The notes beneath the pieces were generated by a model, which was given only the letters and a program-made list of their open reading frames with translations, had not been told where the DNA came from and did not search any database. The position numbers were made by a program, and so were the translations under genes. Shown in pieces: positions 3,090-17,043 of a DNA stretch of 25,116 nucleotides (positions are counted from its first letter, which is position 1; every line of letters starts with the position of its first letter). The DNA is taken from positions 1 through 25,116 of the forward strand of contig BAAFSQ010000140.1 of assembly GCA_054661495.1 (NCBI GenBank). Reading direction: 5' to 3'. This stretch comes from Zygophlyctis sp. KS116. Taxonomy: Eukaryota > Fungi > Chytridiomycota.

Positions 3090-3671
3090 CTATAAAAGTC
3101 TCCAATTTTTATGATTTAAATTGATAAAATCTTTTTCTGATGCTATTCGGACCAAATACTTTTCTAAATATTCCAATTCATGATCTTGTTGATAAACTTT
3201 AAATGGTGAAATCTTTAATCCCTGATCAGGATTTAGACTAAAATTCCCTTGATTATCATCTACATGAATTGTATTATGAGCATTAAAATTTTTGAATTGA
3301 TTCCAAATAATTTCTAATGCCTTGACTGAAACTTTCCTCCCATCATTTGCTTTAATTTTGAAAATAAAACTCTTGTCCAAAACAGCAATAATTTTATACT
3401 GAGTATTCAATAACCCGATCGCCTGTAATTTCATAGTCAGAAACTTTATTGGATTATTTGACCAGATAATAATATCATAATATTCTCCAACTTTTACCAA
3501 GAAATCATGTAAGCCTGGTCTTAACTTTTGCGATAATTGCTCAACTTGCGCATTCCCATCCCATAATGTATAATCTAGATCTAAAACCAGCAACTTCTTT
3601 CCTGGTCTTGGGGGAGAAATCAGGGGAATTGGCAATTCTCTAATTGCACTCAACAAATTCTCTTTTGACAT
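3090..3671 (-). CDS. UBLCP1: FCP/SCP (NIF) HAD phosphatase, UBLCP1-like, without the ubiquitin-like domain
   Basis: PRPGKKLLVLDLDYTL, RPGLHDFL, YDIIIWS and NTIHVDD motifs. Confidence 0.8.
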   Translation of the reverse strand: MSKENLLSAIRELPIPLISPPRPGKKLLVLDLDYTLWDGNAQVEQLSQKLRPGLHDFLVKVGEYYDIIIWSNNPIKFLTMKLQAIGLLNTQYKIIAVLDKSFIFKIKANDGRKVSVKALEIIWNQFKNFNAHNTIHVDDNQGNFSLNPDQGLKISPFKVYQQDHELEYLEKYLVRIASEKDFINLNHKNWRLL

Positions 3672-3679
3672 CAAATTTG

Positions 3680-4996
3680 ATGAGAGTTAAACTAGATAAT
3701 AGTGAATTTGGGATTCCCAACTGTTGGTATAACATTACTAGAAAGCATTCAAGGATAGAGGATCTGATTTCTGATCTGACCATCAAGTTTGATTTGCCTG
3801 AAATTCAATTGGAAATTGATGGTTTTTTACTCTTGGAGAATGAATTGACTCTAGATCTGCTCAGAGAAAATGATCTCATAAGTGTCATTCATAAATCTAG
3901 GAAAAGATTATGTACTTTAAAGGCAGTAGAGAAGGGATCGGGAGAGAATGCAATGAGTTTAGAGTCTGGAAAAGTGGATGGTTCTGATTTGAAAGAATTA
4001 AAACCAGGTGTTGTATCTAGGACCTTTTTAGAGTCTGAATCATCATCAGAAGGTTCATCAGATTCATCAGAAGGTTCATCAGATTCATCAGATCAGGTTG
4101 AAAATTCAAAAAAAATAGTCGAGTCAGTTAAAGAATCAGATGATTCAAGCTCAGATAGTGATTCAGAGTCTAGTGGTTCTTCAGGTTCTGTATCAGAAAG
4201 TGATCAGGAATCATCAGTGGATTCTGCTAAAACAGTTACGCAAGATGTAACGGTTCCACCAGTCATGTCATATTATATAAATCCTCCAATGTCTTTAGTC
4301 GGGAAGAATAAAAGAAAATTGGTTCCAAAAATGTTGAATCAGGAGAGAGTGCATCTGCATTTTGAAGGAATAGAAAAGTCTACAGTTCAAGGAGATAATA
4401 AGGCTCAGGAAGAGGAGATTAAGGCTCCGGATAATGTGGTATTCTCAACAGTTAGATTATATGATGATGAACCTAGTGTGCAGCATTTATCAGCATCTCA
4501 GAAAAGAAGAATTCGTCGTAAAAAGGCACAAATATACAAGACACTAGAATCTCTAAATAATTTCAATGATAAAGATGATGGGGGGATTCCTAAAGAACAG
4601 GGTTTAGAATTACAACAGTCTATTACAAATATTTCTCAAAATGATGAATCTCAAAATAATAATAACAGGGGTTCTGGTATTACTAATATTTCAGAATTAA
4701 TTCCTGGAAAGAAGATTGCGTATCAAATCTTGGAAATGTCTTTTTCTTATCAACCTGAAATTTCTGGTTATATGGAAGCTATAGTAATGGCAATAGACTA
4801 TTTAAACAAAATGGTAACTCTAAAAAGTCTTGAAACAATTCAACAAGAAGCTTCAATGGAAGAAGTAGATGGACAGGAAACTCCTTTTCGTAAATTTGAA
4901 TTACCGCCAGATGATGATTATACTCCTATGGCACCTCAAAATGAAGTATTCATAGTTTGTTTTAATGATTTGATTTCAGTAAAAATACTCGAATAA
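3680..4996 (+). CDS. COIL: Coilin-like Cajal body protein
   Basis: N-terminal MRVKL..IEDLI..LEIDGFLL..LLRENDLISV (coilin N-domain pattern), an acidic Ser-rich middle and a basic patch KRRIRRKK. The C-terminal GKKIAYQILEMSFSYQPEISGYMEA matches the coilin Tudor-like motif. Confidence 0.75.
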   Translation: MRVKLDNSEFGIPNCWYNITRKHSRIEDLISDLTIKFDLPEIQLEIDGFLLLENELTLDLLRENDLISVIHKSRKRLCTLKAVEKGSGENAMSLESGKVDGSDLKELKPGVVSRTFLESESSSEGSSDSSEGSSDSSDQVENSKKIVESVKESDDSSSDSDSESSGSSGSVSESDQESSVDSAKTVTQDVTVPPVMSYYINPPMSLVGKNKRKLVPKMLNQERVHLHFEGIEKSTVQGDNKAQEEEIKAPDNVVFSTVRLYDDEPSVQHLSASQKRRIRRKKAQIYKTLESLNNFNDKDDGGIPKEQGLELQQSITNISQNDESQNNNNRGSGITNISELIPGKKIAYQILEMSFSYQPEISGYMEAIVMAIDYLNKMVTLKSLETIQQEASMEEVDGQETPFRKFELPPDDDYTPMAPQNEVFIVCFNDLISVKILE

Positions 4997-13325: not shown

Positions 13326-13946
13326 ATGTCCCTGTATAATCTTCGAATTAATTATGATCAAGACTCTCTCCTAGAAGATAATCTCCCTAAAGATCCAATG
13401 ATTCTTTTTGACGCTTGGTTTAAACAGTCTGCTGCAAAAGAACCAAATGCAATGTGTTTATCTACTGTAATTGATAATAAACCATCATCTAGAATTGTCT
13501 TGTGTAAATCTTATTCAACTCAAGGATTTACTTTTTTTACAAATTATAATTCAAGAAAAGGAATGGAAATTGAAAGTAATCCTTTTGCTTCTATAGTGTT
13601 TTATTGGGAACAGAGATCTGTAAGAATAGAAGGAAAATTAGATAAAATTTCTGATAAAGAATCTACAGATTATTTTTCTAGTAGACCTAGAGAATCACAA
13701 ATTGGAGCATGGACTTCTCCTCAATCTACAGTCTTGAAAAATAGACAAGAATTGGATGATTTTTATTATAAAACAGTTGAAAAATTCAAAAATGTTGAAA
13801 ATATTCCCAAACCAGAATTTTGGGGAGGATATATACTACGGCCAACAAGTATAGAATTTTGGCAAGGAAGACCTTCTAGATTACATGATCGTATAAAGTA
13901 TATTTTACAGAATTCATGTTATAAAATTGTGCGATTGGCTCCGTAA
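13326..13946 (+). CDS. PDX3: Pyridoxamine 5'-phosphate oxidase, intronless
   Basis: EPNAMCLST, FFTNYNSRKG, YFSSRPRESQIGAW, EFWQGRPSRLHDR and RLAP*. Confidence 0.97.
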   Translation: MSLYNLRINYDQDSLLEDNLPKDPMILFDAWFKQSAAKEPNAMCLSTVIDNKPSSRIVLCKSYSTQGFTFFTNYNSRKGMEIESNPFASIVFYWEQRSVRIEGKLDKISDKESTDYFSSRPRESQIGAWTSPQSTVLKNRQELDDFYYKTVEKFKNVENIPKPEFWGGYILRPTSIEFWQGRPSRLHDRIKYILQNSCYKIVRLAP

Positions 13947-14065
13947 ACTTTTTAATATATTTTCTAATAATTTCTATTCTAATAATTTCTACCATAGACA
14001 ATAGACAGATATGGGAAGACGAGATATGGATAAAATTTGCGCGTTTAGCAAAAATTTGGAAAAAA

Positions 14066-17043
14066 ATGATTGAATTAATCTTGATTTTTGGAGGATTTTC
14101 TTGGATTTTATACAATTATTGGAAATATTTAAAGAGGAAAAGGTTGAATTCTTTAGGGTAATTTATTTTCTCTTACAATAAAGTCCAAAAAGAAGATTTA
14201 TAACTGAAAAATCTCAAATTCCAAAAGTAGTTTTGCAGAAAAAAGTAGAAAAAACAATTTATTTTACTCCGGCAAAGACTAGAGAACAAGTATTCTTTTC
14301 TACTCCTCATTTGCCTTTTAAAACTCCTAGAAATTCAGAGATGGGGAATTTTACACCAATTGTAAAGTTGGACTCTAAAGAGGGAATTGAGGCTGTTAAA
14401 ATTCCTGTAAAATCAATGGAACAGAGGCCAATAGAGATTCAGAGAAATTTAGGGCCAATAGAGATTCAAAATAATTTACAACCTTTAAAATTACAGCAAG
14501 ATAATCTCAATTTTCAGCATTCACAACTTTCAACTCCACAGAAAAGTATAGAAAGTATGCAATTAAGAGTTGAAAAAGAAAATTCAAGAGTAGAAACTGG
14601 GAAAAGTAATAAAAGGGCATTTAATGATGAGGTAGGTCTCTAAATAAATTAATATTAATAGGAGTTGACTCAAGTTAAAAAATCTAGAAAAGAAGTTAGA
14701 TATAAGACTCCAAGGAGGGATAGAGATACTTTGAAGAGGAAATCTACTTTTACAGTTTTAGATAATGAAATTGATAAGGAACTATTGCCGGAAAAAGGTT
14801 GGATTACTCCCATGAGTAGAAGACTGGGAAGGAAAGCTTCTAGAAGTACACAAATAAAGGAAAGAACTAGTGTAATGTGTCAGACTATGCCGGTTCAGCA
14901 AGAGTCTAAAAGGATTAAAGTTACTCCTGCATTAGATAGAGTGAAATTCAAAATACCGGAATCTATTTCTAGACCTGTTTTACAAGGGAATGAATTGGAT
15001 GAGAAGACGGTTCAGGTGTTACTGAATGCAGCAAATGAAGGAATTTCTGGAAGTTTTGTGATTGGGAAGGAAGCAAGTTCTATAGAAGCTATAAAGGCAC
15101 CGCCCTTGGAATTCAAAGCTCCATTAGCAAAAGAAAATATATCTCCAAGTTTCAAGGTTGATGGGGCAGTTGCGCCTGTTCCTCCTTTGTCTGCCCCCAG
15201 TACTGTTGCAACGGAGGTCACGCCTGAAGTTCCAAAGTTTAACTTTAATCTTCCAGTTTCAACATCAGTCTCAACTGGGACGCTATCTCCTCAAAAGCCA
15301 GCATTGACTTTTTCTCTGCCTGGATCTGAAACTCCTATTTTGTCTACAGTTCCTGCAAGAGATTCTGATGTACAAACGCCAAAGTTCTCTTTTGGAGCGC
15401 CTTCAAGCATTACCAGCACTGCAGTCACTACATCTACTATGGCAACTGCCGTTACAAGTTCAATAGCGACTTTTGGGACTCTCACCGCAAGTACAGGTCC
15501 TGCTAGTACTCCTATTACTTCAATGCCTTTTTCAATATCCACTACAGCACCTCCTGTTACTGCAGCTGCTACAAGTGATACTATAACGCCAACTTTTAAT
15601 TTTGGAAAGCCTTCTTCTGGATTCACTCCTCTTCCTACTGTGACAGCACCAACTACTACCACGGCACCTGTAAGTTTTTCTTTTGGGGGGAAAACAAGTG
15701 AAGTGCCTGCTGTTTCTCTGACTAGTTTTGGAAGCAAAGAAACTACGGCCGCTTCTGCTGCTCCTACATTAAATTTTGGAGTTCCTTCATCGACTGCTGC
15801 TGCTCCTATTCCCTCAGCTCCACAGACTACTCCATTTTCTTTTGGGAAGACACCAACTGTATCAACTACACCCTCTACATTTAACTTTGGTTCTTCCAAT
15901 GTGCCTCCGGCCACTTTAGCCCCACAATCTGGCGGCTTATCTCAGCCAGTTTTGGGTAATCAATCTTCTAAAACAGCTGCTCCGATGTTTGGGCAGTTGA
16001 ATCAAACATCTCAGCCGCCAGCAACATCAGCTTTTGGTGGAACTACTGCCCCACCTGTATTTGGACAACCAGCGCCTAGTGCTACCTCTACTTTTGGTCA
16101 ATCAACTTCTGCTCCATTTGGGCAATCTGTATCAGTAACTGCAACACCCTCTTTTGGTCAGCCAGCTCCCATAACATCTGCCACATTTGGTCAACCCGCA
16201 ACATCAGCTTCTGTCCCCTCTTTTGGGCAAGCTATCCCATCAACTTCTGCTCCTTTTGGACAGTCAGCCCCTGTTCAGTCGCCATTTGGTCAAACTAAGG
16301 CTGCTCCTTTCGGACCGCCGTCCATCTCCACTTCAACATCAGCTTTTGGACAATCGGCCCCCTCATCCTCTGTTTCTTCTCCTTTTGGACAAACTACGAC
16401 AGCCCCTGGTTCTTTTGGAGCTGCTGCACCATTTGGAACCACTACAGCCCCTCCTACATTTGGCCAATCACCATCTACTTCTGCTCCTCCTCCATTTGGA
16501 CAGCCTTTTGGTCAGCAATCAGGAAATACAGGTTTTGGTATGACCTCTGGAGCTTCAGCCGGACAGGGATCAAGTGCTCCTGCATTTGGCCAGCCTACCT
16601 CTGGATTCCCACCATCTTCATTTGGACAAGGCTCAACATCTAATTTCAATCAATCAACTCCTGCGGCTCCGTTTGGATCTGCTCCTTCTCCATTTGGAAA
16701 TACATCTACTAATGCCCCTAGTGCTCCAAGCTTTGGATTCTCTAATGCATCGGTTCAGTTTGGAGCCCAAGCTCCTGCAAATCCTCAAGCCCCTTTCAAC
16801 ACACCTTCTGGATCAGCATTCACATTTGGTCAACCTCAAGCTACCGCCCCTTCATTTTCATTTGGAGCCCAATCTCCTGGTATAGCCCCTGCCTCTCCAG
16901 GATTTTCATTCAATGCACCAGGAGCCCCTCAATTACCTCAAATGCCTTCTGGACCAGGATTCTCTCTTGGTGCTGGTGGTGATACTACTCGCAAACTTGC
17001 TCAGCCCAAAGGACGTCTTCGAAAAGCCGGACTAAGACGTTGA
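14066..17043 (+). CDS. FG-repeat nucleoporin of the Nup1/Nup153/POM121 type with a predicted N-terminal TM helix; exons 14066-14157, 14184-14631, 14662-17043 (973 aa)
   Basis: Dozens of FxFG/PFGQ/SFG repeats and a C-terminal FSLG..RKLAQPKGRLRK. Two GT-AG introns (26 and 30 nt) join three exons in frame. Confidence 0.8.

Follow-up and report, generated by a model that had tools for sequence, protein, structure and literature searches.

A conserved hidden exon adds a predicted transmembrane helix to an FG nucleoporin of a zoosporic fungus, a POM121-like layout that appears new for fungi

Pom121 carries a short luminal piece, a single transmembrane (TM) segment and several importin-binding nuclear localization signals (NLSs) that are needed for targeting to pores in interphase (PMC3069009). 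The NLSs of Pom121 and of yeast Heh2 drive import to the inner membrane provided that a long disordered linker separates them from the TM segment, a linker of 53 residues failing in yeast (PMC4569319). POM121 has been called vertebrate-restricted (PMC2951903, PMC4888837), whereas Tetrahymena Pom121, which lies at the nuclear face of the pore, combines an N-terminal TM segment, an NLS and C-terminal FG repeats (PMC5450191), and a 2021 review, resting largely on the ciliate protein, lists POM121 as a candidate component of LECA (PMC8421043). The view taken in the original prediction for the locus described here, that this layout is generally animal-restricted, is thus outdated. A possible invertebrate parallel, Drosophila CG14712, is termed an FG nucleoporin in a paper that is silent on a TM segment. 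In trypanosomes, Nup65 has a TM helix in place of an amphipathic anchor (PMC8421043). A literature search, drawn mostly from papers outside subscription, returned no report of a POM121-type layout in fungi or chytrids.

The locus lies in the window, by which we mean the whole stretch of 25,116 nt that was analysed. Its genome assembly (G000, 12.7 Mb) carries IFT57, many chitin synthases and a Pom152-like gene, and by this gene content the host is a zoosporic fungus, as the original prediction had surmised; IFT20 was not found. The window also contains a 450-aa open reading frame (3644-4996, + strand) with a Coilin C-terminal Tudor domain (PF23086) over the cut-off, a coilin-like gene in a fungus. 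The nucleoporin gene is single-copy in the assembly, and its three exons, joined over GT-AG introns, give a single frame of 973 aa with 36 FG in total. The predicted gene model proved exact in its ATG at 14066, its in-frame 26-nt first intron and its product length, and the N-terminal hydrophobic segment, the basic cluster, the NLS-like motif across intron 2 and the basic tail likewise match. The features are as follows.

14066..14157, + strand: exon 1, 92 nt (30 2/3 codons), with A-run and ATG, helix (aa 1-19/22), aromatic cap and basic cluster (aa 20-26)
14158..14183, + strand: intron 1, 26 nt, GT-AG, phase 2
14184..14631, + strand: exon 2, with conserved motif aa 31-75 (to 14316), disordered linker and first half of the NLS-like motif
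14632..14661, + strand: intron 2, 30 nt, GT-AG, phase 0
14662..17043, + strand: exon 3, aa 181-973 and stop
14611..14691, + strand: bipartite NLS-like motif, aa 174-190, interrupted by intron 2 and kept in three species
15001..15036, + strand: short conserved helix, aa 294-305, the sole helix in the AlphaFold2 exon-3 model
15232..16965, + strand: FG domain, aa 371-948, 35 FG
16951..17040, + strand: basic C-terminal tail, aa 944-973, FSLG...RKLAQPKGRLRK...RR
13326..13946, + strand: PDX3, upstream neighbour (Pfam match)
14040..14043, no strand assigned: CGCG element, 26 nt 5' of the ATG, candidate promoter or 5'UTR element

Orthologues were retrieved by synteny through the neighbouring gene Cut8, direct searches with the nucleoporin having given none. 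The comparison set comprises a near strain (L004), two other uncultured species (L006 and L010), a further strain (L002) and a distant fragment (L011); the three species referred to throughout are that of the window, L006 and L010, all closely related. Relative to the window, Cut8 of L006 and L010 is 73-75% identical and exon 3 56-57% identical. Exon 1 is missing from the gene calls at every orthologous locus retrieved. The A-run and ATG, an uncharged helix of 18-22 residues, the basic cluster and the junction SLG/PKRRF are kept in all three species, where exon 1 measures 92, 86 and 92 nt and intron 1, at the same position and in phase 2, 26, 24 and 25 nt. Removal of intron 1 restores SLG/PKRRF in each species, and unspliced read-through hits a stop at once. 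Intron 2 (30, 23 and 25 nt) is also identically placed. Residues 31-75 share 56% identity with the orthologues, and the motifs conserved there need exon 1, because no Met is conserved before aa ~250, and L006 lacks any Met between 10 and 248. Thus, the proposal of a hidden N-terminal exon outside the open reading frame track is borne out by L006 and L010, which share the exon, its splice position and its phase and retain an N-terminal hydrophobic helix. On these comparative grounds, the hidden first exon is real and conserved in three close species. A donor at 14143, which would give a 41-nt intron in the same phase, is possible on paper and was rejected, since what the orthologues retain is SLG together with the 14158 donor. 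Short RNA contigs from two freshwater metatranscriptomes map to exons 2-3, and none covers exon 1 or either junction; we therefore infer splicing of the nucleoporin introns from the comparison rather than from direct observation.

The frame also stays open without an ATG back to 13925, through a second hydrophobic run (FLIYFLIISILII; dG(app) -1.1) that the original prediction had pointed out. This frame exists, but a functional role for it (13925-14065, overlapping the PDX3 3' end) was rejected, because a stop and an indel interrupt it in strains L002 and L004 and the two other species leave no space for it, the PDX3 stop and the nucleoporin ATG lying only 31 nt (L006) and 21 nt (L010) apart. 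With gaps this short, the PDX3 3'UTR and the nucleoporin promoter of these tandem genes must overlap adjoining coding sequence. Out-of-frame ATGs at -55 and -40 give a short open reading frame (14011-14073) that overlaps the exon-1 ATG; they are absent from the two other species and probably lie 5' of the transcript start. The CGCG element is found at -26, -15 and -15 from the ATG in the three species and is otherwise rare, with 8 occurrences in the 25-kb window and a single one in 5.2 kb of L006. It could be an E2F/MBF-type or a general short-promoter element. Further copies at 2769 and 18072 lie in intergenic gaps, one of them between the divergent genes Med10 and CybS.

The membrane propensity of the helix was estimated as dG(app), using approximate Hessa-type parameters that were sanity-checked on the genome's own proteins. 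The values for four sequences are +0.66, +0.24, -0.83 and -0.50, with +0.66 in the window's species and negative values in L006 and L010, compared with at least +2.7 elsewhere in the nucleoporin and +3.2 to +5.7 for soluble neighbours; the Pom152-like and CybS membrane helices of the same genome score -0.66 and +1.24. Mean hydrophobicity is 1.1-1.2 and the hydrophobic moment 0.12-0.20 (aa 1-18), so that the amphipathic scoring named beforehand as an adverse outcome is not seen. The helix is only 24-33% identical between species, yet remains uncharged throughout, with an aromatic cap at its end; net charge is 0 or -1 before it and +6 to +8 after it. It is predicted to be a marginal-to-good TM segment, short, and marginal in the window's species, and all three species are predicted to have a single N-terminal TM helix with the bulk of the protein on the pore side.

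Beyond the conserved motif, the linker (aa 76-170) is poorly conserved (9-17% identity to orthologues), and the distance from the TM segment to the NLS-like motif is 154, 159 and 141 aa in the three species. The motif itself consists of KR, an acidic 10-aa spacer and KKSRK, with additional basic boxes at aa 196-207, 233-238 and 263-266; from their sequence, these basic motifs would function as NLSs. Thr-Pro at aa 59, 196, 229 and 268, candidate mitotic kinase sites, is conserved in three species beside basic boxes. The AlphaFold2 model of exon 3, built from the orthologue alignment, is disordered (mean pLDDT 34) apart from the helix at aa 294-305, a candidate binding motif. The FG domain contains 7 FxFG, 17 FGQ and no GLFG, with 2.8% charged residues and 60% S/T/P/A; across orthologues the figures are 2-3% and about 60%. 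A predicted TM segment, an NLS cluster on a linker of 141-159 aa, and C-terminal FG repeats with a basic tail thus bear out, at the level of prediction, the POM121-like layout that had been proposed.

With its 36 FG, the protein falls outside the fungal Pom class (Ndc1, Pom152 and Pom34), whose members have TM segments and no FG domain. Separate genes for Nsp1, Nup98, Nup54/57, Nup2/50, Nup42 and Nup159/214 were recognized in G000 by family match or inspection, as were Ndc1-like, Pom152-like, ELYS and Tpr genes (contigs C21, C130, C17 and C11). Pom34 has no match over the cut-off in G000, Nup49/58 was not seen in this fragmented assembly, and its FG loci, an incomplete inventory, include no second Nup1/Nup153-like gene. 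One contig start (C84:1-338, locus L050) truncates a C-terminal fragment of an FxFG protein that has no basic tail and could be another basket nucleoporin.

Family membership was examined with the exon pieces singly rather than with the joined 973-aa protein. PF15229 (POM121), a vertebrate-built model of low sensitivity, has no match at E<=10 in the exon pieces or at E<=1 in the genome, and Pfam profiles give no match in the nucleoporin for PF08604, PF10599 or RanBP2-type zinc fingers. Fungal Nup1 proteins are not known to carry such zinc fingers either. Exon 3 regions 1-200 and 742-793 used as queries returned no homologues and also missed the near-identical L004 protein, and are hence uninformative. 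A search of representative sequences yielded, apart from fragments belonging to close relatives, only FG proteins that are unrelated, a metagenome search found one locus, of the L006 species, viral and prokaryote searches gave one spurious match and none, respectively, and the PDB search gave no match. In the ESM Atlas, a query limited to exon 3, and hence free of the TM exon, retrieves 8 POM121 (PF15229) clusters, the best at 0.91 with 172/256 features, as well as an unnamed arthropod cluster (0.92) and Nup153 (0.77, 109 features), with a recognition of 1621, below the 2300 mark, so that the score carries little weight and may stem from composition. The language-model features thus weakly favour POM121 over Nup153. 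The basic tail (last 30 residues), which is 97-100% identical in the three species and 67% in the fourth fragment, L011, resembles the C-terminal end of Nup153, GTSFSGRKIKTAVRRRK (PMC9975678); the tail of L011 reads SGRKL, close to that end. However, a highly basic motif also closes POM121C (PMC13483366), and the tail therefore cannot decide the family.

Vertebrate POM121 shares with the chytrid protein an N-terminal single TM segment, a long disordered linker, several NLS boxes, a C-terminal low-charge FG region, a basic tail and a length of about 1000 aa. The chytrid protein differs in having no PF15229, about 3 luminal residues compared with about 30, a shorter NLS spacer (10 compared with 15 residues) and Pom152 in the same genome. 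Tetrahymena Pom121 (TTHERM_00312730) is similar in its N-terminal TM segment, putative NLS and C-terminal FG, a likeness of layout to a ciliate, macronucleus-specific protein of 129 kDa that was itself named on architecture alone (PMC5450191). Nup153, Nup1 and Nup124 have in common with the chytrid protein FxF(G) followed by uncharged FG repeats, a (G)RK[IL]...RR tail and N-terminal membrane contact, but bind the membrane by amphipathic helices, whereas the chytrid protein has no zinc fingers and its FxFG spacers are uncharged. Trypanosome Nup65 provides a precedent for the exchange of an amphipathic for a TM anchor, but is an RRM protein of the Nup53 family and no FG basket protein. Yeast Heh1 and Heh2 share the import signal of NLS, linker and TM segment (PMC4569319), but are LEM proteins with the opposite order and no FG domain.

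Several other readings of the N-terminus have to be weighed. Since AT-rich DNA readily codes for hydrophobic runs, such as the upstream one, hydrophobicity in a single AT-rich genome is weak evidence alone, and exon 1, whose junction no RNA contig crosses, might be a chance open frame with the protein starting downstream. Yet exon 1 persists in three species with a frame-preserving indel, the Ser before its junction is coded TCT, AGT and TCA, the lengths of intron 1 fall into all three classes modulo 3, and no alternative Met is available, the first exon-2 ATG being GTG in strains L002 and L004. Only 0.1-0.7% of exon 1 shuffles per species are open and equally hydrophobic, and a chance frame seems scarcely credible. 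The segment is also short, extreme N-terminal and moderately hydrophobic, as a cleaved signal peptide or a signal for another membrane would be, and mitochondrial outer-membrane anchors likewise resemble a short helix with basic residues behind it. This is very improbable, however, as the helix is followed by YYYY or YW and then K/R rather than by a small-residue cleavage region, and the remainder of the protein, an NLS-bearing FG nucleoporin, fits no place but the nuclear envelope. A helix lying on the membrane surface (in-plane or monotopic) would make the protein an ordinary Nup1, apart from the unusual hydrophobicity of its helix. Nup1, Nup60 and Nup153 do have N-terminal membrane-binding helices (PMC8700311), and the helix of the window's species, besides its positive dG(app), contains GG, S and N and reaches moments of 0.33-0.36 in windows starting at aa 3-5. 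The helices of L006 and L010, by contrast, have no polar face (moment 0.11-0.25) and a negative dG(app), and the asymmetry of charge matches a signal-anchor, making a surface helix unlikely.

As to descent, one reading is true orthology to POM121: the gene would have come down from the animal-fungal ancestor or LECA, Dikarya would have lost it, and a separate Nup1/Nup153 would have escaped notice. The Atlas ranking, obtained with the TM exon excluded, points this way, as do the uncharged S/T/P/A-rich FG domain, the several basic boxes, the length, the basic end of POM121C and the existence of a ciliate Pom121; the sub-threshold Atlas recognition, the absence of PF15229 from protein and genome, the short luminal piece and NLS spacer and the failure to find a second basket FG-Nup argue against it, and we regard orthology as possible but doubtful. 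Only tentatively, then, may zoosporic fungi be said to keep a true POM121, or a single TM-anchored ancestor of both POM121 and Nup153/Nup1; if so, POM121 would predate the animal-fungal split, its TM form would have been lost in Dikarya, and the chytrid pore would be a hybrid in which POM121 works alongside Pom152 and Ndc1. The simplest account derives the protein from the Nup1/Nup153 lineage, a TM helix replacing the amphipathic one, with true POM121 orthology nearly as likely. The protein has no sequence-level match to POM121, Nup153 or Nup1, and the species compared are three close ones. Nevertheless, we consider it probable that this FG nucleoporin spans the membrane once, is anchored by its N-terminus and acts in the manner of POM121, seemingly filling the nuclear-side Nup1/Nup153 position in this chytrid lineage.

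For such a single-pass nucleoporin, we suggest that the helix would act as an uncleaved reverse signal-anchor, leaving a tiny luminal N-terminus (~3 aa) and the rest facing the cytosol or nucleoplasm. Importin alpha/beta would bind the NLS cluster, held ~150 disordered residues from the membrane, and the importin-bound protein would be drawn to the inner nuclear membrane by way of existing pores, as for Heh2 and Pom121; we infer the same route because the chytrid protein has the Pom121/Heh2 parts at suitable spacing. The conserved N-terminal motifs may then bind scaffold and basket partners at the inner membrane, seeding or holding pores, while the FG domain and tail may bind transport receptors. 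A membrane-anchored, POM121-like function, as read from the sequence, thus appears quite probable.

The conserved hidden TM exon appears to place a known layout on an FG nucleoporin of a zoosporic fungus, apparently for the first time in fungi. It also illustrates why such genes get missed, the anchor being a 92-nt exon behind a 26-nt intron and absent from gene calls. A fungal protein with the full POM121 layout and a Nup153-like tail falls between the view of POM121 as a vertebrate invention and that of an ancient POM121, and bears on the age of POM121 and on how pores are seeded. It suggests that POM121 and Nup153/Nup1 may represent a single design whose membrane anchors can be exchanged.
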